Made by a program: the position numbers and the translations under genes. A model generated the notes under the pieces. That model was not told the origin of the DNA and searched no databases. It saw only the letters and a list, made by a program, of their open reading frames with translations. DNA of 64,000 nucleotides from Eutreptiella sp. 'Long Island Sound 2002' (taxonomy: Eukaryota > Protista > Euglenida), in the NCBI GenBank assembly GCA_964036045.1, contig OZ038379.1, forward strand, positions 54,746,001-54,810,000, written 5' to 3'. How positions within the stretch are numbered: position 1 is the stretch's first letter; every line of letters starts with the position of its first letter. Of this stretch, positions 10,102 through 51,783 are shown piece by piece.

Positions 10102-12170
10102 GTGTTGGTGGGTGTCTTGGACACCCCCCCCTCCGGTTGCCCGCATTCCCCCCCACTCCACACTACCATGCTCCGTTGTATAGGTCTTGTTATGCCTTTC
10201 TCTTGGGACACCCTTACTAAGCTTAGCATGAGGCTTGTGCATTTGAGTGGGACCAAGAGTTTGCGGGACCCTTTGGTCTCCCAACTCCTTGGTGAGTGGG
10301 TGGCTTCATCTCCCTTGGCCTGGGCCCGATGGTCCGAGGCCACGGAGGTTGGCTACCCCTCCCTCATTCGTGACAAGCAAAAGGAGGCGGTGAAGCAATA
10401 TGCCTCCCTCCTCTTCCCGGCCCCGGACCTCATCGGCCTACTCATGACCTTGAACGTCCCCAAGCTTGGCTTCCGGCACATGTCGGAGTATATGAGCCGC
10501 CGGGGGTCGGCCTACACGGCCGCAACCGGCCTCCTGTTCCCCAAGCCCATCCGCACTCGGGATACGTTCACGGACATGTGGAAGGAGCTGGTCACCCCCC
10601 TTGACCTACGGCCGCCCGTGTCCATCCCCGATCCCCACGGGAGTGGGCGCTCTTGGCTGCTCCTGTCATGGGCCCGGTACGTCCAATGACTTCCATCGGT
10701 AATGGACACCATCGATTGGAGGAGGCCCCTCACCTTCATTGTGCGTGAGGATGCGTACCCGTGCGCCGGTAGTAGCTGGAACCAACTCTCCATTGGGCTC
10801 CTCAACCACGGCGCACGGGGCCGCACACCTGCGTACTTGTGGGTGATAGGGATGGCGGTGTGCAGGTACAAGGACATGGCGGCACTAGCAACGATATGGG
10901 CCAACAACGTGAAGGTTTGTGGCCCATTCGTTGTTTGTTAATTTTTCCGTTAATTTCTCCAGATTGATATCTAGATTTCGGTTAATATTAACGCCTACTG
11001 AAAGTTTAACTTAATATTAATCTCGAGAAACTAATGCAAATATTAATCCATGTGCTTTTTGTAGGTATTGCAGTCCATACAAGATTGCAAGAACTTCTAG
11101 GGGGTGTCGCGCTGGGTGCCAAGCGGTTTGGTCATCAGGGGAGACCAACCCTTCGTGCAGCGCCTCATTGGTGTGTCCACCCCACCCATGGTGGGCTCAA
11201 TTTACAATATGGGGGTGTGGGACAAGGTTGCGGCGGCATGGGTCAACGTGGCGACCCGGCGCACATTGGACCGTGAGCACGCGGCCCGCGTGCGCTACAA
11301 GGAGACCGGCCGTAGCTTGGAGAATGGGGGATGCATAGGGGAACCACACATTGTGGTTGGCCGTTGCGTGGTTTTCCAATGCATCCTCCATCGTTGCATA
11401 GCCATAGGCAGGCTGCAAGTGGCTTTCATCGAGACACGCCTCCTGGACCTCACCAAGGAGAACGCCGACGCCGTGCAACGGGTCCTCTACCGGGCCCGCA
11501 CAGGTGTGAAGTCGGGTACGTTGACGGCACCCGACGGAGAGGAGGCCCGTGCGTTGTTCCTCGCGTGGGAGGAACTTGGTCCGTTGTTGGACTACATCCT
11601 GGAGGATTGTGAATGGCAAGCCGTCGTGGCCATCCGTGACCTCCTTCGGGAGTTGTACACAGACAAGCCGCCCCGCGGGGACCCACATGCGGCCGCGGTG
11701 GCGCGCGCCTACTGTGCACATTGTTGCAAGGAGGCGTGCCAATCAAACTACCTCCTTTGTTTGGAGGAGGATGTCACCGAGGCCGTCGCCAACGCACGCC
11801 GCTTGGGTGTTGGGTTGGGTGCTCTGTGCGCGGATGTTGTTGAGAGCCTGTACGCCATCCTTAAGCGCGCATACAATGACCACCCGGGCCGGTGGGGGGG
11901 TTGCCGGGGGCAACCGAACTAGAACGGGAGGCGGAGGTAGTTTTGCAAGTGTGGGAGTGATGGTTTTTAAAATTTGACCGCCGGTTGCGCAATTACGGGA
12001 CCCCCAATACCGCCCCATGCACCATGGCCAACCTCATAGCCACCCGTAGCCCCTCGCCCTCCACCCTTGCTTCCCCTCCGCCAGCTTTGTTTTCGCCTTG
12101 CCATGGACGCGTCCGCAATGCACAAGATGTTGTGCGACATGTTGGCAGCCAACAATCGAACCCTGGTGTG
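10102..12170 (+). pseudogene. DDE transposase of RAG1/Transib/CMC type (element A); intron 10915-11064; in-frame stops at 10687 and 11098; frameshift near 11900
   Basis: Motifs TFIVREDAY (D1 ~10750), IRGDQPFVQRLIG (D2 ~11143), CILH (~11389), LGALCADVVESLYAILKR (E ~11842) and QVWEWWFLKFD; the GT-AG splice keeps the frame; homologous to B, C and D. Confidence 0.78.
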
Positions 12171-12380
12171 GTTTGCTTGTGCACGCTTGCTTGCGTGTTC
12201 CGATTAAATAGTTGCGGGGAGTTTGTCAATATTTCGAGATTAATATTAATAGTCGCGTCCATTAATATTTACTATATTAATTAATCTTTTGGTCGAGAAT
12301 ATTGAATTCAAGAAATTAACTCGGGGGCTTAAAAATTAGAAAAGAATTAATTTTGTTTTTTCGCGTGTTCCTCTCCACAG

Positions 12381-14501
12381 ATGGCCCAAGTGGAGGCACA
12401 ACTGGCAGTAGCAGCTCTAGCACAAGCTTCAGCTGCTCCGCCAGCCCTGCCACCAGCCGTGGAAAGTCGCCCGCCGCCCGCTCGCCCATCCGAGGAGTCA
12501 AGCGACGACTCCTCAGATAGGCGAAAGAAGGAGAAGCAGGAGAAGAAGAAACAGAAGAGGCGGAAGAGGGAGAGGAGGGAGAGGGACTGGAGCCAAGGGC
12601 TGGGGGGGGGATACAGGCCAGCCGGGGGGGGGGGTTAAGGAAGAGGGGGAGGGGGAAGTGGTGGTGGACGAGGGGAACGTGGACGGGGAAGAGGGGGAGC
12701 AAGTTGAGGTTGTTGACCCCCCACTATGCGCCCCCCCCCCTCCCCTAGTGGCTCCTCAAAGCCCCAGGCCCCCAGTCCGCTACCACCCGGAAGGCGGGGG
12801 CGATCCCCTGGTCAGGCCAAGTGCTAGAGCGGCGCTGTGCGGGGGATAATTTGTTTTATCCTTTCCCGCGCATAGCCACATGACAATCATGTGGATTTTC
12901 CGGAGGTTAATCCGGTGTTTGATTCGCAGGAAGGAGGGGCAACATAGAGGCACCTGGGGTAAGGATGCCTCCAGGGGGGGCGGGTTTGGGTCTGCAAACC
13001 CTACCCTGGTGCCCCCCTCGCCCCCATGCCTGAGACCACCAGTGTGGGCAGCTTGCCGGCACTGAATTTGTTGTTTGACCCCCGCGCCATCCGTTTTCAA
13101 ACGGCGCACTACCAGGTGCTGCTGCAGCACTGGACCCAGCTGGGCTGGGTCAAGCAGTGGCGGCAAGGCGAGGCCGTCGCGTTCGGGGTCGACTAAGGCA
13201 CTGTCCTGGCCGTGCCCCGACCCATTTATGATCCGGGGCCTCAACCCTCATACGAGGGTCTCATCCCGATCTCCCGTAGCGCGAAGGCGGCCTCGGTGGC
13301 TGTGAACCTGGCCAAGCCGGCGGCCTAATCGGCCCCAACGGCCAGCGTGGCAGCCCCCGTTGAGGCCCCTACCGCAGCTTCTCACTTCCGAGATGCCATG
13401 GGGGCAGTGTAGGTAGCTGGCGCCAGTGCTACCTTTGAGGTATGGTGCCCGTTTGTTTTGCTTAAACTCTAGGTCGCCGGTATTAATTTCTCGAGATTGA
13501 TATTTAATTTCTGAAGCGCCGGTCGAAATATGGAAAGTTAAAGGTGAATATTAATGTCCAAAAAATAAAAAAGTCGCTAGAAAAATTAATTTCACACTTC
13601 TGTTGTTTTTTTATTCCATGTCTGCAGTTAGCCGACGTCGTGGTCAACGCGACGCATGCTATGCCCATCCGGGTGGCCTGGCGAGACGCCGAGGGATCCC
13701 AGGAAATACCCCTAGGGTCCCTCCACCGCATGGTGGCCCGAGACCCACCCTTAGGCCTTGCTCTCTTGCGAGGTCTCCATGACTGGGAGACCTCGCGTGT
13801 GGTGAGAGGCGGTGGGGTTTGCACGGGGGGAGGATGAGGAGTTGCGGGGGAGCATCGAAGGGGGTGGGGTGAGCGACGGGGAGGAGGGGGGGAAGGGGGG
13901 GGGGGCGTCCTCCGCCACCGCGCCAACCCCCCCCCCCCAAGCGAAGCCGCAACCCAACCCCCGCCAGCCTGCTCAAAGAAACGAAGGTTCTCCTTCGAGT
14001 CCCGGTCGGAGAGTGACGACGCGGGAATCCCCCGTGGCAAAAAGCCCAAACCCCCCGCCTCCACCCCCACCGCACGGCCTACGAAGGCTTTCGCCGCCCC
14101 CAAGCTCACCAACCCCCCCAAGACCGCCACCGCCCACCCCCCCAACCCCGACCAAGACCGACACCCCCAAGGCGGGGGGTGCAACAGCCGAGAAGAAGGA
14201 TGACCGTGCCGACGATCCGATTGTCGGGACGGTCGCCCGCGTCCCCTACCCCGCAGGGTTAGAGAAGGGCACTGTCCGCGCTGTCCATGGGCAGAAGCGT
14301 GGTGCCGTTTGCGTGGAATACCCGGGCGGCAACACCCTCTACGAGATGGCCTGGCACCTCCTCTTCCCCATCCCCGAGGAGGCCGAGCGGTACTGGGAAG
14401 AGGCCCGGTGGAGCAAGAAAAAGCCCCAATCCCCCGCCCCCACAAACGAAGAGACTAACCTCCCAAACCCGAACCCTACCACCGAACTCACTTCCCGCTA
14501 A
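12381..14501 (+). pseudogene. Downstream exons of element A: Lys/Glu-rich segment, 'GWVK...YDPG..SY.G' domain, 'DVVVN' exon and Tudor/KOW-like domain
   Basis: Introns 12171-12380 and 13440-13627 (GT-AG). Segments WTQLGWVKQWRQG...IYDPGPQPSYEG, LADVVVNATHAMPIRVAW and DPIVGTVARVPYPAGLEKGTVRAV...VCVEYPG...HLLF each have homologues in C and/or D. The Tudor/KOW label is inference. Confidence 0.65.
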
Positions 14502-15639
14502 CCCCGCATCCGGACCCACGAAGACGTGGGACCCCATTACGGGGTCCCATGAGTGTGACGGCCCGCATAGGGACCCAATGGGCCACAATGGCCATGCAAA
14601 ACATGCATGAACACACACATAATGCATTAGATGTTGTGTTGTGCCGTTGTTAGGAGGGTTAATATTTGGGGAATAGAGGTAATATTTGTGAGGTCGATAT
14701 TAATGCTGGTGACTCATTGATTTTTCACTTTTCAAATATTAATCCAAAAATTAAAAACAAAAATTAAAGCCGAGGACCATTTTAACATATGGAAACAACC
14801 ACATGGGTAGGACCCCCCCACCAACCCCCGGGGGAAAATGACACCCAAGCCCGTAAGGCAACCCATGGGGGTCATAAATTTCACGGCACACCCCGTAACC
14901 CCCCTTAAAAAATGCAAACTTGAGATTAACGTGTTAATTTTTGGCCAGATATTAACTATATTGGGTTTAATCTAGGTCACTAGGGAAGGCAAGTCTGCTT
15001 CGAAGGGCCTCAAAGTTAATTTTTGGTAGCTGCTTGGAGTTTGAATGTCACGACCCCACATGAGGGAGAAGGCGACGCCCCCCACACCATTAGGTTCCCC
15101 TGCGAGACCCCCCGCACCATTAGCTTCCCCTATCCCGTGACCATGAAGGAGGGTTTTGTGTCGGGGTAGGCGCCAGAGAATGAGGTTTTGATGGCTCCCT
15201 ACTGCCTCAAGAGCGGCCACTAGAAATGCCGCCATCCACCGTCCGGGCGGGGAGGGGGGTTCTGCAACGGACTTGTGTGTTGCTCTTGAATACCATTAGG
15301 CACTTGGGGCCACGCAATGAGTACTAGCTGGACCTTGCATTGCGCCGCATGCTCCACCATGCGGCTCGTGAGATTCGGTCGGGCGCCGAGGGGAGGGAAG
15401 AAGAGGTGCAGGGGGATGACGACGCGAGGATGGGGTCATTAGCGTGGAGTCGCGCCACGAGCCGCAGCCAAGGCACACCCGGATAGCCAAGCAAAGTCCG
15501 CGGCGCAGCCAGCCTGGGTCCATAGGAAACCCCCGTGCACCCTGACATGCCCCATTGGGTGCAGCAGCACCAGCACTAGCACCAGCACCAGCACACCTAG
15601 CAGCGTGACAAGCGAACAGCTTGACTTCTTGCGAAGCGA

Positions 15640-16440
15640 GACAAAATACTTGCTATGGCGGCGCGGAGGGTGGCGGAGCGAAAGAGGGATGTGCTGCAGG
15701 GTTAGGTGGACGCCCTGAAGCAACAGCTTTTTGCCCGTCGTCGGCAGAAAGAGGAACATAGAAGCAGTAACACTAGCAGTATCAGCAGCCGCAGCACGAG
15801 CTGCAGCATGCGGGGCGCACCCCACCCACACACACCCACCAACCCCGTGGGGATTCATTTTTCGCTTCTGAGCATGCAGGCATGGATGGGGGCAACCGAC
15901 CATCCGGGGGCAGCTGGCTGCAGCGGAGGGGTCCAGATACAGGGGACCACCGCTAACACGCCATTTGACACCGTTTTGCCGCACTTGGCGTCTATGTTGC
16001 ATTCCCACGCGCGTGTCCACGCCCGCTACACCGTGGCATGTGTAACACTAGCGCCCACAGACCCCAATTTCAGGATGCCCCTGGAGCTAGCAAGCCCATG
16101 GGCAGCCACCCGAGGGGGTGAAGGCAGCAAGGCAGTAGGCAACATGGGCACAAGAAGCCAGGACCAATGAGGCCAGTTGCGATGCGAGGCACCATGCCTT
16201 TCACGTTCACTATGGTATCCATTTGTGTGAACAATTTTCGCGCGAAGTTGGGGCGAATTTCTCACGAAATTCGCACGAAATTCACAACCAAAACAGATTT
16301 ATATGTGTGCTAGCATGTGGCCGTGAATGTGAACTTGCCGCAAATTTCGCGCAAAATTGGCACGAATTGATTGAACATTTTTCAATTTTGCTCCTGCAGC
16401 TTTTGCGCCATCGAATCATGATTCCAAGGGGTTGTGACGA
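15640..16440 (+). pseudogene. Uncharacterised coding remnant (ORF 15706-16170) followed by a probable intron (~16215-16396) filled with the GAATTTCG(C/T)ACGAA-type motif
   Basis: 154-aa ORF, GTATCC donor, CTCCTGCAG acceptor; motif shared with clusters at 2240-2400, 9450-9600 and element E. Confidence 0.35.
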
Positions 16441-32334: not shown

Positions 32335-32454
32335 CATGTTCATTGGGATTGTATTTTGATTGTGTTGCTTGAGTTCAGCTGCAAGGGCATCATCGAAAAC
32401 GAGAAGTTTTTTGATTCCCAAATTGCAAGGATTGGTTTTATTTGCAAAAGCAAG

Positions 32455-33130
32455 CCACGCTGCTGCCCAGCAGCCGCCGGAGCCACGGCTGGTCCCCACC
32501 AAGGAGGACCGCTGCCAGCACCTAGCTGTCCCACGCGTAAAATTTTTTGCTGTCAATAATGGACGGAAGGACCTGTGTTCATAAAAGGTCTTCATAATTC
32601 AGATTCGTAAAACGCGTTCATAATTCATAAATCAACAGCACGGCGTTTTATGACGGCCGTTTCCGAATTATGAACGCGCGGATTATAAACAACTTATGAA
32701 CACGAAAATGCAGACTACAAGCATGTAGCACGTGAACCCAAATTTGGCCCAGGGCAACCATATCCTTGTCCTCCGTGACGACCATGCCGATGACCCATAG
32801 GAAGGCGGGTGTGCGCGCCTTTTCCCCATGGCCCAATAGCCCCACCAATAGCTGCGACCAGCTACCACCGGCGCATGATACGTGTCACCCCGCGGGTGCG
32901 GGTGCGGGTCCAGTCAATCGACTGGCACAGGGCTGGCCGGGATTGCACGTATTGTGCCCACGACCGCAGAGGCCAACAACGACCCGATGATGGGGAGGGT
33001 AAGACATAACAAAATGTGTGGACAAAGAAGCGTTCATAAAAGCTATTCATAATTCATGGTTTATATGTGAATTGTTCATATTTGAACCATGAATTATGAA
33101 CAATACTACTTTTCATACAGGTACCTAGGG
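32455..33130 (-). mobile_element. Element B: 5' fragment of a TTCATAA-subfamily transposon (TIR plus transposase D1/D2 exons), truncated at the PLE inverted repeat
   Basis: End CCCTAGGTACCTGTATGAAAAGTAGTATTGTTCAT (31/35 identical to the end of C); RCWPLRSWAQYVQ, RGDTY, CAGGSWSQLLVGLLGHG...EDKDMVALGQIW, intron 32573-32722 (GC donor), then GGDQPWLRRLLG. Confidence 0.82.
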
Positions 33131-34289: not shown

Positions 34290-37200
34290 CTGGCCGAAAT
34301 TGAGGCCAGCTTTTTGGTTTAATGTTGAATGACTATACTCATTTTCATTTTTTTAAGGGCTGGCCGAAATTTCTCCCAGCTCTCTGGTCTAATCACCATT
34401 CATACACTCATATTCGGCTTTTTTTTGCCGGTGTGGCCGAAATTTCGGCCAGTATTTCCTCTTTCTACGCATATCAGCAATTGTTTTCCCATCCAACACA
34501 TTCTTCTTGGTTCCAGAGGTTCCACAAAACCGACCTATACACCACAAGTGAAAGAACAGCAAAGATACGGTTCATTGAACAGCAAACAAAACTACCCGCA
34601 AAGGATATACGTGTATTTCCTATTTTTATGAACCTGGCCGAAATTTCGGCCAGCTTTTCCAAGAACATCAAAACACATGGTCTTATTCACCAGACAGGCC
34701 CAAGCTGGCCGAAATTTCGGCCAGGTCCTTCAAAACTTGAAATAACGTCACAGAAATGGATACCTTTGAGGTTTTTTAAAAGTTGGCCGAAATTGAGGCC
34801 AGCTTTTCCATTGGTTCCATTGGAAACATGCATGTGTATATCCACCTTTTAACGTTTCTGGCCGAAATTTCGGCCAGCTTTTTGGTTTAACGTTGAATGG
34901 CTATACTCATTTTCATTGTTTCCAGGGCTGGCAGAAATTTCTCCCAGCTCTCTAGTCTAATCACCTTTCATACGCTCATATTCGGCTTTTTTGCCAGTGT
35001 GTGCCAAAACAATCAAAACACATGGTAGTATTCACCAGACAGGCCCAAGCTGGCCGAAATTTCGGCCAGGTCCTTCAAAACTTGAAATAATGTCACAAAA
35101 ATGGATACCTTTGAGCTTTTTTGGAGTTGGCCGAAATTGAGGCCAGCTTTTCCATTGGTTCCATTGGAAACATGCATGTGTATATACACCTTTTAACGCT
35201 TCTGGCCGAAATTTCGGCCAGCTTTTTGGTTTGGTGTTGAATGACTATACTCATTTTCATTTTCTTAAGGGCTGGCCGAAATTTCTCCCAGCTCTCTGGT
35301 CTAATCACCTTTCATACACTCGTATCCCGCTTTTTTGCCGGTGTGGCCGAAATTTCGGCCAGTTTGTCCCATTTCTGCGCATATTAGCAATTGTTTTCCC
35401 ATCCAAAACATCTGGCCGAAATTTCTGCCAAGTTGCAATTCTTGTTGTGCATAAATATTGCACCGTACACTCCTATAAAGCTGCTTTCTTCTCACAGCGT
35501 TAATGTCCTCTGGTATTACTATAACTGTCATGCTCGTATGGGGTGTGCCACGCATTGCCACTGTTTTGTGTGTACATTCTCTGTTTTGCATTTTGCTGGC
35601 CGAAATTTCGGCCAAAGTTGCCTTATGTGGACCCCTGATTCCAAATGACACACATTTCTGGCCGAAATTTCGGCCAGCTTCTCGGCAACCCGGTTTTGAA
35701 CAGTGGTTTCATATCCAGTGCAGGGCTGGCCGAAATTTCGGCTATGGTATTCCATCATTCGTGTCAAGACGTCGATTTTGGGCCATTTTGGGTTGAATGG
35801 CGCTTGTTATTGCCACTTTTGTGATTTCTCTTTCCATGAAATCCCCTGCAGTAGCATCCTTTTTCATGACCGAGCCTGCAATGGATTCACAGGAGGTGCT
35901 TATTTCCCCTCTAGCTGAAGCTGCGTCCGGAAACGGGCAACCCCAACCTGCCCATCAACCGGACGGGGATAAGGCAAGCACAGAGGGACTTCAAGGGGAG
36001 CCTAAGGCACCACAAATGAAAAATTCATCAACCACCATCACATTATCCGACTGGGTCACGTCAACAACCAAAATAAAAGTTTTCTTTGACCAAATTGTAA
36101 TAGACCACGACCGAAGCATTGGCCACGTCCGTAAATTATCCGAGGATCGTGTGCAGCGGCGCTATGACGATCTCAAGGCCGCACCGCCTGTGGATTACAT
36201 CCAAGATCTTCTTTTTTATAAAGTCATTCGTATGTCTCCTGCTGCCTACTGCCATTCCCAACGGGTTATATTGTTTGCCGGTACGAAGGTTGGCCAAAAT
36301 TTTGGCCAGCATCTGCGTCCCTAAGTGTTTTTGGTATACTGCTATTGTTTTTTCCCATAGCCTGTGTGGATTTGTCAGTTGGCAAGTATTTGCTTGTCAT
36401 TGAGTGTGGTACATTGTACACCATCTTCAAATGTCAGTGCACCTGTGCTCTTTGCGCATGTCTACCGTCATAGGTATCCATTTCGGTGACGTTATTTGAA
36501 GTTTTGAAGGACCTGGCCGAAATTTCGGCCAGCTTGGGCTTGTCAGGTGAATAAGACCATGTGTTTTGATGTTCTTGGAAAAGCTGGCCGAAATTTCGGC
36601 CATACACGTATATCCTTTGGGGGTAGTTTTGTTTGCTGTTCAACGAACCGTATCTTTGCTGCTCTTTTTTTGTGGTGCATAGGTGGGTTTTGTGGAAACC
36701 CCGGAACCAAGAAAAATGTGTTGGATGGGAAAACAATTGCTGATATGGGCAGAAACAGGAAATGCTGGCCGAAATTTCGGCCACACCGGCAAAAAAAGCT
36801 GAATATGAGTGTATGAATGGTGATTAGACCAGAGAGCTGGGAGAAATTTCGGCCAGCCCTTAAAAAAATGAAAATGAGTATAGTCATTCAACATTAAACC
36901 AAAAAGCTGGCCGAAATTTCGGCCAGAAGCGTTAAAAGGTGTATATACACATGGATGTTTCCAATGGAACCAATGGAAAAGCTGGCCTCAATTTCGGCCA
37001 GTTTGCAAAAAACCTCAAAGGTATCCATTTTTGTGACATTATTTCAAGTTTCCAAGGAACTGGCCGAAATTTCGGCCAGCTTGGGCCTGTCCGGTGAATA
37101 ACACCATGTGTTCTGATGTTTTTGGACCCGACTGGCAAAAAAGCCGAAGATGAGCGTATGAAAGTTGATTAGACCAAAGAGCTGGGAGAAATCTCGGCCA

Positions 37201-37622
37201 GCCCTTAAAAAAATGAAAATGAGTATAGTCATTCAACGTTAAACCAAAAAGCTGGCCGAAATTTCGGCCAGAAGCGTTAAAAGGTGTATATACACATGCA
37301 TGTTTCCAATGGAACCAATGGAAAAGCTGGCCTCAATTTCGGCCATCTTCCAAAAAACCTCAAAGGTATCCATTTCTGTGACGTTATTTCAAGTTTTGAA
37401 GGACCTTGCCGAAATTTCGGCCAGCTTGGGCCTGTCTGGTGAATAACACCATGTGTTTTGATTGTTTTGGCACAAACTGGCCGAAATTTCGGCCAGGTTC
37501 ATAAAAAAAGGAAATACACGTATATGCTTTGGGGGTAGTTTTGTTTGTTTTTCAATGACCCATATTTTTGCTGTTCTTTTACTTGTGCTGTATACGTGGG
37601 TTTTGTGGTAACCCCCAACCAA
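34290..37622. mobile_element. Element F: foldback-like structure built from modular repeats punctuated by the palindrome GGCCGAAATTTCGGCC
   Basis: Many copies of the 16-bp palindrome; 34290-35340 modules recur in inverted orientation at 36440-37622 around a unique core; termini and TSD not found. Confidence 0.7.
35880..36229 (+). pseudogene. ParB-like N-terminal exon in the core of element F
   Basis: IDHDRSIGHVRKLSEDRVQRRYDDLKAAPP, followed by a GTATGT donor at 36230; parallels the REDNVDEVVVKMLKGAP segment at ~20670. Confidence 0.4.
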
Positions 37623-40100: not shown

Positions 40101-42583
40101 GGGGGGGGGGGCAAATGCGCTTTTTTGTGTTTTTTTGTGCTTTAGGGCTGTACTAATTTTTTGCGCTTTTTGGTTTAGCTTTTTTCCGCTTGCTTGCATC
40201 CCTTGTCACCCCAGTTTGCATTCTTTTCCTTTGCTCCATACATGGACAAGTTCATCTCACGTCCACTAGTTGCTTAAGAAGATGAATTTGAGCATGATTG
40301 CTGTCCTGACTTGGAGGACAAGGACCTAGAAAATGAAGGTGATGTTCAAGAGCTGGAGAGAAAAAAGGGGAGACTGGATTATGGGTCCAAAACGACCCAG
40401 CATCAAGGGCACGGCAATGTCCTCTTGTGACATCTGAAGTGTGTGGTGAGAGCACGTGGTGCTGTGCATGGTAAAAGCTAGTGTGTCACAGAAGAGATGT
40501 CCTCCCGACAGGCACACCACCCGGCCATGCACATCACCCGCCCATCAGAAACGACCGGAAGACCACAAAAACGTGAAGCAACCAAATGCCACTCGTCGGC
40601 TAAGAAGTATGCTAATGTCTAATGAAGACGTCGAGGGTAGATTCAATGTTCTGTAATGGAAGCCCTCAATGCTACTGATTGTGGCTAGCTTTGTTTGGGA
40701 TCAACATGTGTTACACTACCCTGTGGATGTTGTGATTTGTCGCGTTTTTTTCCATTTTTTTGAGCTTGTTTTTTGACATCCCAAGTTGCCCCCCCCCCCC
40801 ACCCCTAGAAATAGCCATTCGGCCCACAAATGGGCACCTAAGAAGGTAGGGGTTAAAGAGCCCTTTCAGATTTTGTCCCCTTGTTTGGGGACGCTTGAGT
40901 CCCCCAGGGCTGCCTAGGCGCAATTGACCGTGTGTTGGGGGGGAACCCAAGGCAAGGCTTGGGCAAACACGCAAACTAGGGAGCGGCTTGGCCACGACGT
41001 GGCATGGCCCATCCACCTCCGGCCATCTAGGGTAACCGCGATGCGGCAAGATTTGTGCATCGGGGTGGAGGACCGCAGGAGGGGTTGTGGAACCAGGCAT
41101 CTTGCGCCCATGCAACAATCTCCTTTGCCGTGTTTGCGGAGATATTTATGGGTGCCGGTTCCATCTTTGGGCTTTCCGCTAGTTATCCCGAGCCATTGCC
41201 CCGCTCCTACCAGCACTAGCGGACACGTGAGTCCATGTGGAGGGGAATAGGGTCGGCCCGTGATTATGGCAACGCGCGGCCTATGGGGCAGCCCCCTCCC
41301 GAGCTTGCGGGTTGTCCCGACAGCTGGCGGCTAGTTAGGTGGCCAGTGTTTGTCAATGGTGGTTTGCCCCCCCCCCCCCCGCCCCTTGAAAGGGTGGCAC
41401 CCCCATAGACACTTGTTAATATGGTGGGCTGCGTTGGTCAGAGGTTGGTGGGGCGGCCCCGTGCACCCCATGAATGCTTATTTGTATTACTGCTGAGGTA
41501 GCTGAACGGTGGGGTGAGGCGGCCGCAAGCCTCGGGCAACAGCAGGTGGGGCCCCACGCCGCGGCCCCACCTTGGGGTTGGAGCAAGTGGGGCACCCCCC
41601 AACCCCACAACAGGGGGGCAGGGGCGAGTGGGAAGGGTACTTACCGCTAGATGACAGAAAAGCCCCCTAGTGACGCCGGAGGAACCCAAGTCCACCTGAC
41701 GGGGGTAGGGGCAGCCCGTTTGGAGGGGGCGTGTGGCGCGGACCCCAATGTATGGCATACCTGGACAAAGGGGTGGCATACCCTTCCCAGTGCCACTAGA
41801 ACCCGAGTCCTCCCATGTGGGGGATAGGGGCGGCCCGCGGTGGGGGCCACGAGGGATCACCACGGGTGTGTCATGCCTGTTTTCCATGTTGTGCTGTGTT
41901 GGTGTGTGTACCACTTTCGCTTTGGATTCAAGATTGAAGGATTACGTTGCCGATGGGCCCAACCACATACTGATCAGAGAATTCGCATTTGGAGCAAAGC
42001 GACCCGATGTCCGATGCCGATGTGGAACCGGGGATAGTGTCCGTCGGCCTCCAAAGCAAACAACAAGTGTGTTCAGATGCTCCACCTACTTTTGCCCTTG
42101 GTACGTGTATGAAAGGTAGTTTTGTTCATCATAAATGGTTTTATGAAATATGAATGCATTTTGCTCTTGCTAGGGTACCCATGGGCCATTTTCGTTCAGA
42201 ACTGGGGGGGTTGGGTCAACACCCTCGTGGTGATTTTTTTTTGTGGACCGGGGTTTTTTTGGAATAATTGCCATTTTTGCCAGTTTTTGCAAATTATGAA
42301 AACATCCTCCTCTGTTCATAATTCGGTTCATAATTCAGTTCATAATTCAGAACTCGTTTTAACGAACCTGCCGATCATTTTATGAACGCGTTTTATGAAA
42401 GCGGTTTGTAAACAGATGCACATGCATACAAAAATCGCTCAATTTTCAATTTTTCTTGTACACTGCACTGCTTTTCTTTGTCCCTTGTCGTTGCTTGTTC
42501 TTGCCGCCCTAAACCTCAGGACTGGGGCCTGTCGGGTCCTCCCAATGGGTGTCCGTGGCCTGCTTTTCGCCCCCATCCGGGGC

Positions 42584-44728
42584 CTAGGCATGGGTTTGGG
42601 TAGGTGGTTGGGCTCTCGGTTTGGCCAAGGGGTGCGCTGGGGCATCCACCTCCATGGGTGCGGCCTCAGGGGCAGCTTTGGGCTTGGGCTGAGGGGCCTG
42701 CTTAGCCGGCTTGGGGGCCGGCTGAGCCGGCGGCACAGCGTCCGGATTGGGGTTAGGCTTGTTTTTGGCCTTGGCGGCCTTCTTACCTGCAGGTGCAGCC
42801 TTCTGCTGCTCCAAATGGGTCACTGCTGCAGCATGAGAGGCATACAACAGATGCCTCTCAACCCGAAACATCACCTTCTCCCCTGGGTGTTCCATCCACA
42901 CTCTCACCCCCGCCCCCGCCACAACCGAGGTTACAACCCCCGGGTAGACACCATCGGTGTAGGGCACATACACCTGTTCACCAAGCAGGGGGTCACGTGA
43001 CTCATCCCGCTCCAAAGAGGGGGGTTCCTCGCGGTGCTTTTGCTGCAGGGGCTGCTTCCCCTTCACCCCCTTCCCGTGTCCACGCGGGTGTGCTTGGTCC
43101 GACGATGAGCTGTTGCCCGATTCGAAGGACTTGCGCTTGGGACGGGGGGCCTTTTTGGGTTGCATGGGGTTTTTTTTTCCCGGGGGGGGGGGGGGGGGGG
43201 CAGGAGGTTTGGGTTGCTCGGCGGGGGGGGGGGGGGGGCGCTTTGCTAGGGAGGTGCTGCGGGGGCTGCCGGGGTTGGGGGGGTCAACCCACCACTGGAC
43301 AGCAGGATCTCCTCGTCAGCACACCCCTCCCGCCAGAATTTCCCCAGGCTCGAACAGTGGGGCGTATTCGCCGCCCACGTGTCCGTTCGGCGGCGGGACC
43401 GCCCCTAGTCCCTCAGCCCGGACAGGATGGCGCAAACCTGTTGGGGGTTGAGGAGCAGCAGCTGGTGCAGGGCGGACTGGGCAATGCTCAAATCGGCGGT
43501 GCCCAACCGGTACCGAATGCAGACCCCCGCGACGTCCGCGGGGTTCACTTCCACGTCCATGACCTGTGACAGTGCCGCTCATAAAATGCGTTCATAAAAC
43601 GCATTCATAAAATGCGTTCATGGTTCATACACAGGCAATGCAGAGTCGCTGAATTGTGAACGCCGAATTATGAACGAATTGTGAAAGAATTATGAATGCA
43701 CACACCCAAAAATCCGGCTTTGGTCCGACGGTGCCCATGGCGCCCAAGGCGGTCCGCAAATTTGCAGCTGCGCTGGGATGGGTGCCCTGGGGGGCGCCTG
43801 TGGGGGCCGTGGTGCTGCTGATGGCCGGCGCTGCCCGGCCAAGGGGATTGATGGGGCGGGTGATGGTGAGGCCCTTGACGGCCCCCTTGTACGAAGCCTC
43901 CTGCCCCGGGTCATACAACCCCCCCAAAATGGATTCCCACTGGGGGATGCACTCCAACTTGCGCCCGGAGCGATGCAGCTTCACCCACCCCCTTTTCTCC
44001 CATTGGAGGAAGCACAGCTCCCAATTGGAGCTCCACATCAAGGCCCCCAGCGGGCCCGTAAAAACTTTGGCCTGCGTCAACTCCCCAGCCCCAATTGGTT
44101 CGGGGATGGGGGACAGTGGCTTTCCCGGCAAGGGGTTTCTATGCCCATGCCCCCCCCGCCCCCGTGTACCGCCAGCCCCCCCCCCCCCCCCGCACCCTTG
44201 TTGTGGATGCGGCGCCGCAAAAGGCGGCAAAATGCCTAGCGTAGGGTGATATAAATCACCTCGCGGCTCGAAAAAAGGGGGGCATCGGGGGAGTAACCAT
44301 TGTCCAGCGCTCCTTGCATGCTTGGCCGGCCTCCCCCCTCAACCACGGGGTCACATCTGAAACCTGCTTCCCCTCCCCAACCCCTGAGTCCCGCTGCACT
44401 GCCATGTCCTCGATCTCGGCGTTCAGCTCCTCAATGTCGGTCGCTCCTCCTCCTTCGCCCCCCTCCCCCCCGCTGCCTCCTTCTTCTTCCTCTTTTCCTC
44501 TTCCTTCTTCTCCTTCTTCCTCCTCTTCCTCTCCTGCTCTGAGGAGTTTGTTGACTCCTCACCCGACGACTTGGCGGCGGGTCCGGAGGCGGGGTGAGCG
44601 GCAGGGGGTCGGGAGTGCGCTTGAGAAGGAGGAGCTTGAGGTGGAGGTGGAGGCGGAGGTGCAGCTTGAGGCTGAGTTGGAGCTAGAGCTTGGGCTGCCA
44701 GCCGCTGCTCGTGTGGACGTCGGGGACG
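42584..44728 (-). pseudogene. Downstream exons of element C (Lys/Glu-rich; GWVK...LYDPGQEASYKG; MDVEVN exon; Tudor/KOW-like)
   Basis: Introns 44729-44873 and 43564-43705; RDPLLGEQVYVPYTDGVYPGVVTSV...VWMEHPGEKVMFRVERHLLY aligns with the domain at ~14210-14370 in A. Confidence 0.7.
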
Positions 44729-44873
44729 CTGTTCATAAATCGTTCATAAAACCGCTTCATAATTCATCACTTCATAAATCGGTTCACAATTCATTTATGA
44801 CGGCAGTTTCGGTTTTATGAATATGAATATGAATATGAATATGAACGCGAACAACAACAGACAGACGGCATAC

Positions 44874-45900
44874 CACCAAGGTCAGGGTCGCCTTCCGGCT
44901 CTCCTCCAACAGCTTCCTTAGCTCGGCGGCGTCCATGGATGGGCGAAGAGTTCTAAAGCTAGGTCGCAGAGGGCGCGTGGGTGGAGGGTGCTTGGGGCGT
45001 GGTGCTTAGAAGTGAAGCGGCGGTGCACGCCGCGGTGTATGGCGTGTTATAGTGTAACCACAGCAGGTGAAAGGTTAGAAACAACCATTCCCAAACCTGC
45101 TGGACGGCCATTGCGTCCCGTCCCACTGCACTCTTACCCGCACCCCCACCCCTGGAACTGTGCCCATTGTTTCCCTCCTTCAAAATGTAATTTACGCTCT
45201 CCACAACGTCCCCCGACACAGCAGCCAATCCCACCCCACATGCTCGAGCATGGCACCACAGTCCTCTTCGAGGAACAATAAATAGTGAAACCCCGACTCC
45301 CCGCAACAGTGTTCCCGTCCTGAAACGCAGCAGCAACACGTCGGCACGAAGAGCGTGGCACAACCAGAATCGGAGAGTACAAAGTGCGTAGCAATGTTCG
45401 CAGCCCCATAACCGCTTGCCACGTGGGGTCGTCCTCGACGTCTGCAAACAGCGGCGCAATCTGCTCCCAGGCCCACAACAAGTTGTGGGCCTCCTCCCCG
45501 TCCGGTGCATTGTGCGCCCGCAACCGCACGCCAAGCTCGTTGCGGTACAGAATTTTCTGTACCTCCCTCGCAACCTTAGGGGGATGATTTCCCACCCGGG
45601 CCTCAAGGAAGGCCACGAAGAGCCTCCCAAAGGCCATGCAACAGTGCAAAATGCTCAAAAATACCCGGTTTCCGGCTGCGACCAGCAGCGGCTCGCCGGT
45701 GCATCCTGCGGCATCCAAATTTTAGCGGGTCACCAGACAGCGACGACCATTGTTCGCATCCGACTGCGTTGTCCTCCGAGCAGTGACGCCATTCCTTCGC
45801 TTGGCGGTATTGTCACACACGGCCTCGTTGAAAATGCTCCCCACTTGGGGAGGATGAGCCGGCAAAGGTGGCGAAGCTCAAGCGTGCACCGCATCCGGTG
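44874..45900 (-). pseudogene. DDE transposase C-terminal half (element C)
   Basis: GCTGEP, FLSILHCCMAFGRL, APDGEEAHNLLWAWE, HYLLFLEED, SGDVVESVNYILK and QVWEWLFLTF align with A and D; frameshifted. Confidence 0.8.
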
Positions 45901-46810
45901 AAGGCCGCGCACCTGGTGGAATTCGCACGGACACAAAAAAGGATTCCGCACTCCATGATCAACACGATAGGGTGACCACCGCTTGCTCTGCGAACAGGGC
46001 AAACACGCCAAGAAAAGCACCAAGTGAGTGATGCACATGCCTGCAATCCGGTCAATTTGGAGGAGTTTCCCGAAGGGGAAGACTACGAGTGTAGCCGGGG
46101 TCAAGTGGTGCATAATTGCAAGGAATGCCTGAGCCACAAGCAGAAGCTAGCCGAAGGTTCGTGTGCCCTCAGTGTTTGCTGCTTTTTACGTGTTGTCTCC
46201 GAAAGTGTCCCTATGTTCCGGTTTCAAAGTGGCACGCGTTTTAGGCGTGTTCCGTATCGGCTTCGTATGTGTCCTCGGAGACCCTGGTTCGCTCTACGCG
46301 TTCTGTGCATTGCCTATCCTAATCTAGCTTCTGTAGATAGCCAGGTTTCGGCAATGGCAACTGCCACGCTGTTGATTGCAACACCACGTAGCACCTAAGC
46401 CACTTTCGTGTGTGCCACGATGAATTGTTCCAGGGCTAGCCAACCCATGAGCACTTTACCAAGACTTCCCCACCAGTGCACTGCACAGGGCAATCGCCTC
46501 AATTTTGCGCGTGGCAGCAAGGTGTGCAAGTGATGTTTGACCGCAGAACCCTACTCCGGGCGGCCGCAAGCAATGAAATGGCAAAGACTTTTGTTGGGTG
46601 CTATGACCGCACCACAAGGACGCAGTGTTCGGCTGATGACGATGACAAGAGGCAACGTGAGTTTGCCCGTCGTCTGAATATAAGGGTAACGACCTAAATT
46701 GCATCACCACGTGCACCTGCCTCATCCAAGAATGCCCCTTTTCAATCATAAGATCCACCCCGCGGAAAGCTTCCGAAAGGTACTGGATCCATGAGACCAT
46801 CCCGAACAAA

Positions 46811-48548
46811 GTGACACTGCGCGATATGGAAGGCAACTTCGTATCTCCGTCAAAGCCGCACTTCTTCACCCGGCAGGGTCTACAGTACTCCTTCAAGACT
46901 GGACGGCGGTTTCCACTCGCTGCTTGTACCCGGGAGGCCTTCAATGCTGAGCGGCGAGCTCGTTGTACCCTTCTCCAGCTAGCGCCGCCAATCACCGCTG
47001 GTACCTTCCCTTCGTTCAGCCGCTCATGGCCCATCGCCTCTTGGCTCAATTACGTGCAGTTGCGCAATGCGCTGCGCGATTGCATTCGCTGGTCACAACC
47101 CCTCTTGTTCATTGTGCGGGGCGATGTGTTTTGCTTCATAGGGGGAGGTTGGAGCCACACTGGCATCGTGTTGGCCAACCATGCTCCCCGCGCCCGCCAA
47201 GCGGCGTACTACTAGGCTAGCAGGCTGGCTGTGTGAGGTAACAAGGATATGGCCCAATTGGGTCTCATGTGGCCTGGCAACCTGCATGTATGGTTGCCAC
47301 GAACACGTAGCTATTTCGTTTCGCCGTTTAGTTGTTCAAATTTGAATATTCGAACGTCAAAAAACGTTCAAAAACCGGCACAACTGCCCGAAATTCGTTT
47401 TTCGAATTCCAAAAAAGATTTTTGAACATTCAAAATTCTTATCTGCTTTCAGATTTTGCAGCACATCTACGACACCGGCCGCTTTACTTGAGCCACCGTG
47501 GAACGTGCTGCGACCGTTCGCTGCACCGGTGACAGCCCCTGGGTCCGCTCCTGGGTGGGCGTCTCGATTGGTCCCCAATGGGGGTTGATCTACAACGAGG
47601 CAATATGGGATGCCACCACGCAGCGGTGGGCAAGGCACCCAACAATGCTGCACCCTGCAACGCCATGCGGACCACCACCGCCAATACTTCCTGCATCGCC
47701 ATAGCCTGCAATTGCCGCTTGCGTCGCTAAGCCCCTAGTGCGCATGGTAGGGCAGCACATTTTCATGTGCATTGTGCAGTGCATCATGGCAGTGGGCCGG
47801 TTTCTGGTGCAGTTCTATGGATGCCCTATGCACCGACCATGATAATGCACGGCGGGCCCGTGTCCAGTTCGTCTTGGACGGGGCACACACCGGGATTCGC
47901 ATGGGCTCCGCTGCCTCGCCGGATGGGGAGGAAGTGTACCGGTTGCTGCTATCTTGGGAGCAGGTACAAGATGCGGCGTGCTTGGATGCCGCGCACCCAG
48001 CTGGTCGTGCTGTACTGGAGATGCGGGTGCTGCTGCGGCATCTGTACCGCACTTACTAGCATGGGCCGCCCCCGCATTCTCGTGGGCCAGCCAGCCGCTT
48101 CCGAGAACACGTGGCCCCGAAATCGGGGTCCCACTACCTCCTATTTTTGGAGGAGCACTGCGGCGATGTCTTGGCGGCCCTGCAGCCCCATGGCATAGCC
48201 TTGATTAGCCACAACATTGTTGACTCTGTGAATAGGATTTTGAAGTTGGTCTACAACCACCACTTGGCCCGTGGGAGTGGCTGCGCAGAGCATCCCACAC
48301 TGTGCGAGGCCCGCGTGGTGGCCCAAGTGTGGGAGTGGTGGTTCTTGCCGTTTGATCTGCCACTCCACACGCGGGAAGTCCGCCATAGGACATCATGCTT
48401 GGTTGGTACTCTGATGGAACCCATTGTGCAACCCCCACCTCCCCTTCTCGTTCCCCGCTCGCCACCTCCCCCAGCTATCTTTCAGCATGGACGAAAACGC
48501 TGTCGCGGCGATGATTGCTAGGAGCGACAAACAATTACTTCAAAAAAT
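46811..48548 (+). pseudogene. DDE transposase (element D); intron 47288-47452
   Basis: SRSWPIASWLNYVQ, LLFIVRGDVF (D1), GNKDMAQLGLMW, TGDSPWVRSWVG (D2), SPDGEEVYRLLLSWE, SHYLLFLEEH, NIVDSVNRILK and QVWEWWFLPFD; several stops. Confidence 0.8.
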
Positions 48549-48599
48549 GGTATGCTTGTGCTTGTATTTGTTTGCATTGTCGCATTGTGCGTGCTTGTG

Positions 48600-48790
48600 A
48601 TTGAGTACAGTACAATATAGCACAGTGCAGTACAATGTAGCACAGTACAACACAGTACAGTACAACATAGTGCAATAGAGTAGAACATAGTACAGCACAT
48701 TACAATACAATATAGTGCAATACAGCACATCACAGTACACCACAGCACGGTACAGCACCGTGCAATACAGTACAGCATAGTTGTACACAG
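48600..48790. repeat. Degenerate pentanucleotide microsatellite (CAGTA/CAATA)n within an intron of D
   Basis: Visible 5-bp periodicity. Confidence 0.85.
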
Positions 48791-51783
48791 GGAGCAGGGA
48801 ATATTGTTCAAATGTGAATTTTACAGTCCAGACCAGTACAGAGGGAGCAGGGAATGTCGTTCAAATTTGTATTTTAAAAATTCAAAAATCCTTCAAAACA
48901 GGTGCATTGACGTCAGAACTATTTGAATTTGAATTTTTCTTTTTTGAATATTCCATTGTGGGCATGTGTTTGCAGGTCATGCATGAGCTTGCCGCAATCC
49001 GAGACAAAGAACGTCTTGCGGCGGATCGTTCACCGCGCCCCGGGCCATGATTGGCCCGTCGTTGGTACATTAACTGGTACACTACTGAGCCCAAGAGCAC
49101 CCCGGAGGTTTTGATCCACTTGCGCTCCGACACCTCCGAGGAGCCCAGCAATGCAGGTGGTGCGGTCGCCCGCTTGCCCACCGTCCATTGCCATCGAGCC
49201 CAGTGTAGGGTCTCCACCAACACTGAGGTGCTCTGCGGGCTTCGAGTGCTAGATGGAACCATGCAGTGTGCGCTGCAACACAAACTGCAGGGTGATGTGG
49301 GCGTTCCTGAGGCCATAGAAACAGCGGGGCGTCCAGCGCTGTTGAGTCCTTCCCAACAGCAGCAGGCAGCCATGGCACCGCGACGGCCTTGGCAAGGGCG
49401 CTGGAGGGCACAACCTCGTGCAACCCAGTGCGTGGGGTCGCCCCAATGTCCTCCACAGAATGCTCGGAGCCAAATTGTTGGTCCCCCTCCTCCTCCTTTA
49501 CCACAACCCCAACGTCTCGTCTGCGCTCTACAGCCACGGCCTCGCCTGCCATGCCCTGTCCTGACATGTCCCTCCTGTCACCCTTTCCCATCATGTCCTT
49601 GTCCTTGCTCTCCTTTTTCGATTTCTTTTCTTTTTTGGGGCGCTCATCCTCCCCGCCCACGCTTTCCCCGCACCCTTCCGGCACCGGAGAAGAGGAGTTG
49701 GTGGGGAGGGGGTCGCTTGGGAGGGGGGGGGCTAGAATGGAGGTGCTGTCGCTGCCGATGCTGCTACTGCTAATGGTGCCGCTGGCTAGAATGCAGGTGC
49801 TCCAGCTTGCGGCACTTGGGGATGCAGGGCTCTGGCTGAGCCTGGCATGCCTGGCAAGGTCTATATATCCACGCACAAGCCCACAGATATTGACACCGCC
49901 ATCCCGGGACTACAATGACGCGGCCCGAGACTACGCGCCGATATCCCCGGAAGGCGAATGTCGTCGAGAAGGAGGCTCAAACACCGGAGGGCCTTTTCCG
50001 CGCCGGCGTGGCAGCGTTGCTGGCGCGTGTTAGTAGCCAAGAAGTGCAGGTATGCCCCCCCCCCCCCCCCTTGTGGTCTGCCCCACGGAGCGCAAATTTG
50101 AAATTTAGATGTTGGTGACGTAGGACATTCAAATGTCAAAAGTCCAATTCAAAAATGAGCAGGCGGCGTAGAACTGTCTTTTTTGAAAAAGTCAAAAAAG
50201 AATTTCAAAATTCAAACTGAACGTTTTTTCCTGTCTTGCCTATCGAAATCTGTTTTAGGTCACCGACATTTACACGAACGCTTCACATGCTGCCGCTGTC
50301 CGTGCGCAATTGGAGGGGGCGGACGGCGGCAGCAAGGACATTCTCAACATCGGCGGCCTCTTCTGCCTCCTCTTGAACTGTCAGTGTCCGGCCTCTAGGT
50401 CCTGTGCGGGCTGCACGAATTGATGCAGGGCCGCGAGCTCAGCGGCCTTTGGGCGACTTCGGGGAGGCTGCCGCAACTATGGTTCCCGCTGCAGGAGGGC
50501 GGCAAGAGCTCCACACCCGCGTGCAAGGCGGCCCTAGCCCCAGCCGCCGTCTAGACCGAGGAAAGCCCGCCGCCCGCCCCGCTAGCGCGACTCAAGTTCG
50601 AGTCGCATGACAAGTGGCGGTTGCGCGGGCACAAGCGGCCCCCCAGCTGTACCCTTCGTGAACCGGCCGTTTGAATCCGAGATTCAGGGTACCGTGAATT
50701 TCACCTATTTTTGCTGTGTTTTGCTCGTAACTTGGTGCTATCGTGTGCTTTTGTCGTGCTATCTTCGCCCAAAGTAAGATCCAACAAATGTGTGCAATTT
50801 ACAGTTTTGCAGTAGCCGCATGGTTCAACACATTTGGTGAGATCGCCGTGAATGTGAAATTCACGCACCCAAATTCACGCATAAATTCACGCTAGATTCA
50901 CAGATTCACGAGAATGTGAAATTCGCACGAATTTCGTACGAATTCGTACGAATTTCGTGCGAATTTCGTGCGAATTCGTACGAATCGGCCCCAATTTTGT
51001 CTTGTCACTGCTATTTGTTGCACACATTGGATATTGAACAATTTGTTTTGTAGATCCCTAGATACACGCTAGCAAGCACAATTTCGTTCTAGCCTAAAAC
51101 GACATCGCCAGGGCGTTCTAGCCTACAACGTCTAGCTAGAACGTAGACTAGAACAGGAATCATTCTAGCCTAGATTTGTTCTACAGTAGAACACACATAA
51201 CAAATCAAACCATTATACACATTACATTTCTTATGCTTTGTTGCGTTGCTCACAAATTTATTGGGAAGGGCATAGGTTATAGGTGATAGTGGATGCAGTG
51301 GTGGGGGGTCCATTGGGGTCAAACCATTGTTGCATTGCTCACACAGTTGTTGGGAAGGGCAAAGGTGATAGTTGCTAGTAGATGCATGAGGGTGGGGTGG
51401 GGGGGTCCATTGGGTCAAACCATAGGAGCGTAATCAACCACGTCTAGGGTTGGGAGGGGGGGGGGGCAAGGATACCCCCACCTACACCTGAGTGTCTGGG
51501 TGTGGGGTTAGGAGGGTGTCTTGCTTGTTGCAGTGCGGTTAAGGTTAGGGAGGGTACTCCTTTTCTCTTCACAGGTTTTTTCTACTGTTTCATTCTTCGA
51601 TGTCGGCTCTTCCAAGGTTTTCACCTGCAGCTTGGTAGAAGAGTTGGATTGTTCACCCACCAACAGGGATCGTGACACGTGTTCACACGCCATTGGGTAA
51701 CAGCATCCGTGTTCATGGCTCCGTGCGATTGGGTGCATCCAGACTGAGGTATGTTGCATGTAGATGTTTCGTGTTGCCACATA

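Follow-up and report, generated by a model that had tools for sequence, protein, structure and literature searches.

Predicted introns of an abundant Eutreptiella transposon family carry fold-back modules matched to the element's own ends

Introduction

Short units repeated near the ends of DNA transposons are known as binding sites. The subterminal repeats of CACTA (En/Spm) elements are bound by TnpA, and element proteins likewise bind the subterminal repeats of hAT elements. The first intron of the hAT element Tol2 contains an Angel-like inverted-repeat block, which is not known to be made of Tol2's own end motif. Introners are intron-generating transposons of algae, dinoflagellates and fungi. 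They are present in host genes as numerous, nearly identical copies that occupy new positions and have target duplications (PMC9860276, PMC12130899). Here a 64,000-nucleotide stretch of Eutreptiella sp. 'Long Island Sound 2002' (GCA_964036045.1, contig OZ038379.1, positions 54,746,001 to 54,810,000; "the window") was analysed. It contains a transposon family whose predicted introns are built from the same short units as the element's own ends, each lineage having its own unit. The window is eukaryotic, transposon-rich DNA. The same protein is encoded by four stretches, A, B, C and D (tblastx), which make up three transposon lineages (A, B/C and D). Every copy is a decayed pseudogene. A complete element is approximately 5.1 kb. 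Residue identity to A is 55-58% for B, 44% for C and 37% for D (tblastx).

Relatives from outside the window were used for comparison, and the ends were defined from full copies taken from the assembly. L001 and L002 align with A from end to end at 81-82% identity, and L003 is a diverged copy compared with the A clade. L004 is a separate lineage with approximately 71% identity to A in exons 1 and 2. L006 is related to B/C, and L007 (3727-10860 at its own locus) is a complete D-like copy. L008 and L009 are two metagenome contigs; the relatives that they carry are distant (33-39% identity) and have long open frames.

Results

Lineage-specific units common to introns and ends

The introns and ends of each lineage share a unit of the type GTTNAWA, 7-9 bp long. 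The unit is TTAATATT with TCTCGAGATTAAT in A, TTTAAATTT in L004, GTTCATAA in B/C, GTTCAAA in D and L007, CGTTCAAAG in L009 and CGTTATAGCG in L008. All 12 matches to TTAATATT/AATATTAA lie in the introns and ends of A, with none elsewhere in the 64 kb. TTCATAA/TTATGAA occurs 25 times in the 884 bp of B/C introns and ends, not at all in A or D, and six times in 49.6 kb of background. The 801 bp of D introns contain 18 matches to TTCAAA/TTTGAA. The 18-mer TCTCGAGATTAATATTAA, searched with at most 4 mismatches, was matched at five sites across the window, every one within an A intron. None of the motif clusters was counted in exons of the window.

In a matrix of local alignments, introns and their own ends scored z = 2.5-18 within a lineage, while cross-lineage scores were mostly below 2. 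The sharing of 8-mers gave a block-diagonal matrix. The proportion of intron 8-mers present in the element's own ends was 0.13-0.21 in A and L001, 0.14 in L004 and 0.24-0.35 in B/C and L006. Shuffled introns reached at most 0.08. Cross-lineage values were 0.002-0.06, each below the own-lineage share, with an exception of 0.08-0.11 between the related A/L001 and L004. For B/C the intron-end share was 0.317 compared to a largest shuffle of 0.055. An initial annotation, made from the letters of the window, had described intron sequences peculiar to each lineage, a motif in A and B/C introns that recurs in the ends of the same lineage, and exons free of the clusters. All three descriptions agree with these counts and scores. 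The suggestion that the motifs might be equally common in host introns is excluded at the scale of the window counts, the motifs being absent from the introns of other lineages and, apart from the six TTCATAA/TTATGAA matches, from the background.

The initial annotation had left D without a match between introns and ends, and this did not stand. Lineage D seemed exceptional because the D copy in the window is without its true ends. The complete copy L007 has a 28-bp inverted repeat with GTTCAAA units at both ends. D introns share 7.7% of their 8-mers with the L007 ends (largest shuffle 3.5%), compared to approximately 1% for A and B/C introns.

The units also change together. L004 has switched to TTTAAATTT-type units in three introns and both ends. 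Its exon divergence from A is like that of L003 (synonymous divergence, dS, about 1), and L003 retains A-type units with an intron 1 that still aligns with A intron 1. Across the lineages compared, changes of unit in introns and ends always occurred together. The intron-end motif pattern itself is certain. Since it is shared by six lineages or more, and by relatives found in other samples, it would not easily arise without either selection or a systematic mechanism of copying.

Fold-back modules in introns and subterminal zones

Each intron corresponds approximately to one module, which consists of a forward array of units, a short GC-richer centre and a reverse array. Both subterminal zones contain the same units in the same module layout. 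This goes beyond the motif clusters of the initial annotation: each intron is a whole fold-back module (folding z-scores of -5 to -14 where the open frames are long), and sequence relatedness among the modules extends over most of their length. Introns B1, C2 and C3 are mutually colinear almost from donor to acceptor (scores 27-40) and are also colinear with the 3' subterminal module of C at 42283-42412. A1 and A3 align likewise, as do D1-D3 (z = 4-9). Introns within one element are approximately 65-75% similar. The hairpins are near-perfect in copies with long open frames, and the arms are complementary through the spacers as well as the units. Hairpins were also detected in the decayed copies (B1, z = -5.3; A1, -2.7; D2, -2.5; C3, -2.4). 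The modules are without the terminal 8-11 bases of the element (CCCTAG...), and so they look like the recognition part of an end minus the cleavage part.

The pattern recurred in each further lineage fetched (L004, L006, L007, L008 and L009). In L008 the 8-mer TTATAGCG/CGCTATAA has 25 matches compared to 0.07 expected, all within introns. Three blocks, each made up of a forward run followed by a reverse run, account for 23 of these. The remaining two are forward matches 200 bp upstream of the second block, within intron 2. The blocks fold with z-scores of -5.3, -6.8 and -13.8, and the minimum free energy of intron 3 is -108 compared to -52 kcal/mol. In L009 there are 13 matches to CGTTCAA/TTGAACG, compared to 0.25 expected, in the 5' end and introns 1 and 2, with hairpin z-scores of -3.4 and -3.5.

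No stand-alone motif clusters were found in the window and nine loci (approximately 150 kb), every cluster being located in a cognate intron or end. No stand-alone modules were found in approximately 100 kb of flanking DNA, and the intron segments showed no excess DNA depth. By eye, neither duplications flanking the modules nor CCCTAG termini inside them were seen. The possibility that the clusters are independent insertions of miniature inverted-repeat transposable elements (MITEs), which the initial annotation had raised against itself, is thus unsupported. An origin as introners or independent MITEs was rejected on the same grounds, with no duplications, termini or dispersed copies of their own in the window and nine loci. 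A conserved GC-rich centre (CCGGCAGAA-like) across lineages was considered and dropped, as no k-mer rose above the shuffles. No Rfam family matched in L001, L008 or L009.

Two introns contain tandem arrays. D intron 2 has an array of approximately 10-bp units (GTACAGTACA / GCACAGTACA) at 48600-48770 and is expanded to 427 bp. L008 intron 2 has a different array, GGGATACAGGGATATGG.

Intron borders, positions and reading frame

The nine introns in the window are AT-rich islands of 31-42% GC within exons of 56-67% GC. Borders are GT...AG in eight of the nine; the donor in B is GC, and the related copy L006 has GT there. The three introns are in phase 0, at positions conserved among lineages sharing 37-58% of residues. 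The equivalent positions reported for A, B/C and D in the initial annotation were confirmed by translation. The start of exon 2 aligns as VLQSIQD (A), VLPSIID (B) and ILQHIYD (D), and that of exon 4 as LADVVVNATHA (A), MDVEVNPADVA (C) and VTDIYTNASHA (D). Intron 1 is at the identical codon in the distant relatives L008 and L009, in which long open frames flank each module on both sides.

When the three segments were removed from L001, the four exons formed a single frame with few decay stops only; the junctions, at residues 229, 598 and 953, all coincide with codon borders. Exons of the A clade compared with L003 have a nonsynonymous to synonymous ratio (dN/dS) of 0.25, indicating purifying selection. 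Read libraries X1 and X2 look like DNA, with thousands of contig pieces from many diverged copies and, among the joints listed, none at the intron borders. On the continuity of the frame, the prediction that the three segments are spliceosomal introns is well supported.

An in-frame stop is present at 11098 in A, approximately 32520 in B and approximately 47489 in D. All three fall in a six-codon stretch 12-17 codons past the intron 1 acceptor. They hit three different codons, and L001 and L002 are open there. Chance decay is possible, although the coincidence is striking. A second frame before intron 2 overlaps the transposase frame and encodes a conserved Met-Asp peptide at 12099-12170 in A (MDASAMHKML..), 44937-44874 in C (MDAAELRKLL..) and 48486-48548 in D (MDENAVAAMI..). 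The frame in phase with exon 3 is the transposase frame in A and L001 and the Met-Asp frame in C. The exons downstream may thus have an alternative or overlapping start in the Met-Asp frame.

Element ends, transposase and superfamily placement

The ends have the form 5'-CCCTAGTG(A/G)CC...GG(C/T)CACTAGGG-3', and the termini begin with CCCTAG. A 2-bp target-site duplication was present in all four full copies (AA, TA, AA and AG). The gene is a single frame of about 1,250-1,260 residues interrupted by the three introns (L001, approximately 1,260 codons). The exon-2 protein was modelled using AlphaFold (AF2) with a predicted local distance difference test (pLDDT) score of 82.8. A fold search with this model returned 42 RAG1 chains with E-values of 4e-5 to 4e-3 and template-modelling (TM) scores of 0.5-0.58. 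BbRAGL, HzTransib (E = 0.03) and the P-element transposase also matched. The part matched extends from the second aspartate to the glutamate of the transposase, and the catalytic glutamate is within an ESxNxxLK-like motif. In the AlphaFold database RAG1 proteins and DUF4218-named (CACTA-associated) proteins match the model about equally. Language-model features likewise indicate RAG1 families. The model contains a DDE (Asp-Asp-Glu) core with a RAG1-type insertion domain. Pfam gave no family and no RAG1 match for any protein piece, and a profile search against PDB sequences returned noise only. The element is classed, on the model, as a cut-and-paste transposon with a DDE transposase of predicted RAG1/Transib/CMC-like fold in its catalytic half (CMC: CACTA/Mirage/Chapaev).

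The family matches no named superfamily cleanly. A typical Transib element is excluded by the 2-bp rather than 5-bp duplication and by termini of CCCTAGTG, CCCTAGGT or CCCTAGAA, which have no CAC(A/T)(A/G)TG heptamer-like start. A typical CACTA element is excluded by the CCCTAG termini and by the lack of a Pfam sequence match to CACTA transposase families, the DUF4218 likeness being at fold level only. The duplication of 2 bp is within the 2-4 bp of CMC elements. CCCTAG resembles the CCCTAGAAAG of piggyBac, but piggyBac was rejected because the flanks are AA, TA and AG, not TTAA, and the fold is RAG1-like. In L009 (37-80) the 5' terminus CCCTAGAAGCC directly follows telomere-like repeats of AACCCTAACCCTAACCCTA. 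The CCCTAG terminus of the family resembles a CCCTAA repeat.

Element copies and other features of the window

The features of the four copies are listed in Table 1.

Table 1. Positions of the transposon copies, introns and subterminal modules in the window
Feature	Coordinates	Strand	Details
Element A, full length but decayed	9890..14985	+	CCCTGGTGAC.../...GTCACTAGGG ends; 2-bp duplication AA/AA
A 5' inverted repeat and subterminal zone	9890..10030	+	TTAATCTCG / AATATTAA units; intron 1 colinear with zone
A intron 1, fold-back module	10915..11064	+	GT..AG, phase 0; 5 TTAATATT/AATATTAA matches; hairpin z -2.7
A intron 2	12171..12380	+	Donor phase 0 in transposase frame; acceptor before ATGGCCCAAGTG
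A intron 3	13440..13627	+	GTATGG...TGCAG borders; alignable with intron 1 for most of its length (score 31, z 8-9)
A 3' subterminal zone and inverted repeat	14640..14985	+	Module-like block at approximately 14655-14765
Element B	32455..33127	-	5' end 32993-33127, exon 1 remnant, intron 1 32573-32722, exon 2 start
Element C, 5'-truncated	42096..45860	-	Exon 2, intron 2 44729-44873, exon 3, intron 3 43564-43705, exon 4, 3' end
C 3' subterminal fold-back module	42283..42412	-	Alignment to intron C3, score 42, z 13-17
Element D	46575..50693	+	Exon 1, intron 1 47288-47452, exon 2, intron 2 48549-48975, exon 3, intron 3 50050-50258, exon 4
Solitary end of a further lineage	51047..51200	+	CCCTAGATACACG..., GTTCTAGC x2, then GCTAGAAC; directly downstream of D

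Decay of A is seen in two stops, at 10687 and 11098, and in a frameshift near position 11900. Its inverted repeat is imperfect and approximately 90 bp long, the 5' end pairing with 14905-14985. The block in its 3' zone has a GC-rich centre between TTAATATT-type units and is similar to intron 2 (z = 6.7-6.9). Copy B has an internal deletion; the undeleted layout was seen in L006. Six TTCATAA/TTATGAA matches lie in its intron 1. It is cut short by an element at 30087-32454, inserted in exon 2, which has 315-nt arms (30226-30540 and 32140-32454) that are 97% complementary. Copy C is without its 5' third and is 78-80% identical to L006. Copy D has many stops, its ends are uncertain or missing, and it is 71-77% identical to L007. 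Termini of D at 46211 and 50693 were a guess and were rejected, as the flanks mismatch and the L007 terminus differs.

A large fold-back element is located at 34200-37610. Its arms are up to 465 nt long and 93% complementary, and it has 13 copies of the palindrome CTGGCCGAAATTTCGGCCAG. Arrays of 11-bp units of the CGAATTTCGTACGAAATTCGTGCG type, in direct and inverted sets, occur at 9440-9560, 16240-16370, 50850-50980, 52150-52270 and 53000-53150. They flank A and D, and example arms are 52107-52234 and 53066-53193. These arrays probably mark another repeat family with a palindromic unit. A weak match to a light-harvesting protein was found at one fetched locus, and related sequence words are present in an estuary metagenome, from which the host is taken to be an aquatic, photosynthetic protist.

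The transposon family is very abundant in this alga, since thousands of DNA contig pieces, from many diverged copies, were placed on A. With the longest open piece of A as query, 282 related predicted proteins were found, nearly all in one large eukaryotic assembly. A profile search of 1.84 billion proteins gave 606 relatives, all unnamed fragments that point to no particular superfamily.

Discussion

Proposed internal copies of an end-recognition module

It is proposed tentatively, at a probability of approximately 0.45, that the intronic modules are functional internal copies of the end-recognition module. This reading is favoured because there is one module per intron in every lineage, the units switch in step with the ends and the cleavage part is absent. 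By analogy with the subterminal repeats of CACTA and hAT elements, the units would be recognition sites of a DNA-binding function encoded by the element. The intronic modules would be extra internal copies, housed in introns because a tightly packed element has no other non-coding room within it. The match between introns and ends would be maintained by one protein reading both. The modules could serve to load or bridge the transposase along the element and so aid the pairing of the ends. Alternatively, they could let the protein dampen its own gene. Ongoing gene conversion is not an easy explanation given the similarity of approximately 65-75% among introns of one element. The modules do not appear to be amplified on their own, since intron depth is not in excess and clusters occur only inside cognate elements. 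In a wider form, held with the same reserve, the modules would be working parts, either read by the element's protein or acting as pre-mRNA hairpins. They would be kept in step with the ends as a self-recognition code, in a RAG1-fold family with 2-bp duplications and no clean superfamily. The initial annotation's interpretation is partly supported: the introns are at equivalent positions, their sequence is lineage-specific and the motif follows the element's own ends. Its protein-neutral slots carrying a self-recognition or autoregulation code are a hypothesis. The finding of whole fold-back modules related over most of their length makes an RNA-level role and a copy-and-overwrite origin serious rivals.

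The evidence for selection on the intron sequence is mixed. A intron 1 differs from that of L003 at p-distances of 0.23-0.28, compared to 0.43-0.50 at 4-fold degenerate sites. This figure is from the alignment-based result, a tblastx-based version having given a wrong-frame artefact. Between lineages intron 1 has a distance of 0.30-0.38 compared to a dS of 0.75-0.81. After correction for composition, divergence relative to 4-fold sites was 0.43-0.55 for introns and 0.40-0.43 for ends in three lineage pairs. The comparison at A/T positions is confounded, since most A/T states at the 4-fold sites of GC-rich genes are derived. L001 and L002 form a neutral pair (dN/dS 1.08) in which intron divergence equals or exceeds exon divergence, which argues that AT-rich DNA is not intrinsically slow here. 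Within introns, conservation of motif over non-motif positions was significant only for B/C-L006.

A number of points weigh against a functional role. Between A and L001/L002, the divergence of introns 2 and 3 exceeds that of synonymous sites. G/C positions change about equally fast in introns and 4-fold sites, and alignments of AT-rich DNA have a floor near p = 0.36. Motif positions diverge less than others (0.071 compared to 0.159, P = 0.01), which is partly an ascertainment effect. No DNA-binding domain was nameable with Pfam in the protein pieces. An AF2 model of the exon-1 (N-terminal) protein had a pLDDT of 44 and was too poor for a fold search. The complementarity of the arms through the spacers suits a structural or copy-origin view at least as well as independent binding sites.

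Alternative explanations

The modules could instead be functionless passengers, with end-derived subterminal fold-backs copied into or over pre-existing introns. This is considered unlikely, although several observations speak for it. The copying could occur by self-insertion of end-derived mini-elements into AT-rich introns, or by template switching or conversion during repair. Introns and untranslated ends alone would tolerate insertion, and the hairpin shape would make the added length harmless for splicing. The introns of one element are colinear, spacers included, both among themselves and with the module in the 3' subterminal zone, as such copying would leave them. Pieces of introns also resemble end sequences: part of A intron 1 resembles the inner inverted repeat at the A 5' end, ACCTATCACTAAGACGTTCAA in L007 intron 3 resembles the repeat ACCTATCTGAAACATAAGGTCGTTCAA, and GATAGACCCGTTCAA in L009 intron 2 resembles GGTAGACCCGTTCAA in the 5' end. 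The A-rich flanks at the element ends (AA, TA, AA and AG) and the speed of introns 2 and 3 in A compared with L001/L002, at least that of synonymous sites, are also in its favour. However, one module of the same layout is present in every intron of six lineages, where chance re-insertion should give empty, double and nested cases. The modules have no flanking duplication or internal CCCTAG termini, and neither stand-alone modules in the flanks nor excess depth were found. The likeness among introns indicates that the copying was not recent, yet the hairpins are near-perfect in copies with long open frames.

A function at the RNA level is improbable, more so than passenger status. Hairpins in the pre-mRNA would pair the splice sites, or would be Dicer substrates giving small RNAs that match the untranslated ends, for self-limitation or host silencing. 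The strong hairpins of the long-open-frame copies L008 and L009, those still detectable in the decayed B1, A1, C3 and D2, the pairing of the arms through the spacers and the occurrence of the same units in the transcribed subterminal zones are all consistent with this. An aid to splicing would leave the use of the end motif in the hairpin unexplained, however. G-U compared with A-C mismatches in the stems have no consistent sense-strand bias (0 vs 5 in L008; 9 vs 0 in L009), and no Rfam family matched. Finally, a composition artefact, or AT-rich host-type spacers between separate reading frames in place of introns, is very improbable: the low complexity and AT-richness of the introns and the pseudogene state of all window copies are in keeping with it, but no shuffled intron comes up to the sharing observed between introns and their own ends, the motifs of each lineage are missing from the AT-rich parts of the others, the L008 unit is a GC-containing 8-mer far above expectation, the L001 exons join in one frame exactly at codon borders and the exons are under purifying selection.

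Significance

If the modules are functional internal recognition modules, this would be the first known eukaryotic DNA transposon with introns carrying cis-acting sites that co-evolve with the ends. It would provide a natural series of matched protein-and-site variants with at least six unit types. Such a series would be material for studying drift in transposase specificity, end recognition by RAG1-fold enzymes and how autonomous elements stay apart from relatives and parasitic short derivatives. If they are passengers, they show how end-derived fold-backs can occupy entire spliceosomal introns of a gene that still works, which bears on the conversion of transposon sequence into intron sequence. 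On either reading this is a very abundant family with no clean fit to a named superfamily.

Comparison with known systems

The literature search found no prior description of such intron modules. As far as could be found, fold-back intron blocks matched to the element's own ends and changing with them by lineage have not been described earlier. Introners are alike in being spliceosomal introns of transposon-like, often inverted-repeat sequence, and in their marine protist and algal setting. They differ in that the introns here are at old, lineage-shared positions and carry the element's own end motif, with no duplications seen and no separate amplification. The internal enhancer of phage Mu (the internal activation sequence, IAS) is alike in idea, as internal sites read by the end-binding protein aid assembly of the transposition complex. 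Mu, a prokaryotic system, has one enhancer and lacks introns, and this is an analogy only, the element here being known from its sequence. Tol2 also has a fold-back block in an intron of its transposase gene, but in one intron only, and we know of no co-variation of that block across lineages.

The stretch of the transposase between the second aspartate and the glutamate has its best fold match in Transib, RAG1 and ProtoRAG. The family here differs from them in its 2-bp rather than 5-bp duplication, the lack of a CAC-heptamer-like terminus and a three-intron gene with intronic modules. CACTA elements (En/Spm, CMC) are alike in cut-and-paste transposition, a short duplication (2 bp in this family, within the 2-4 bp of CMC elements) and a long multi-exon gene. 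Like the family here, En/Spm has short units reiterated in both orientations over approximately 100-350 bp at each end. To our knowledge CACTA introns are not built from subterminal units, whereas the family here begins with CCCTAG and has every intron built from its end units. Conserved intron positions are joined in this family with lineage-specific, end-matched fold-back content, a combination found in none of these known systems.

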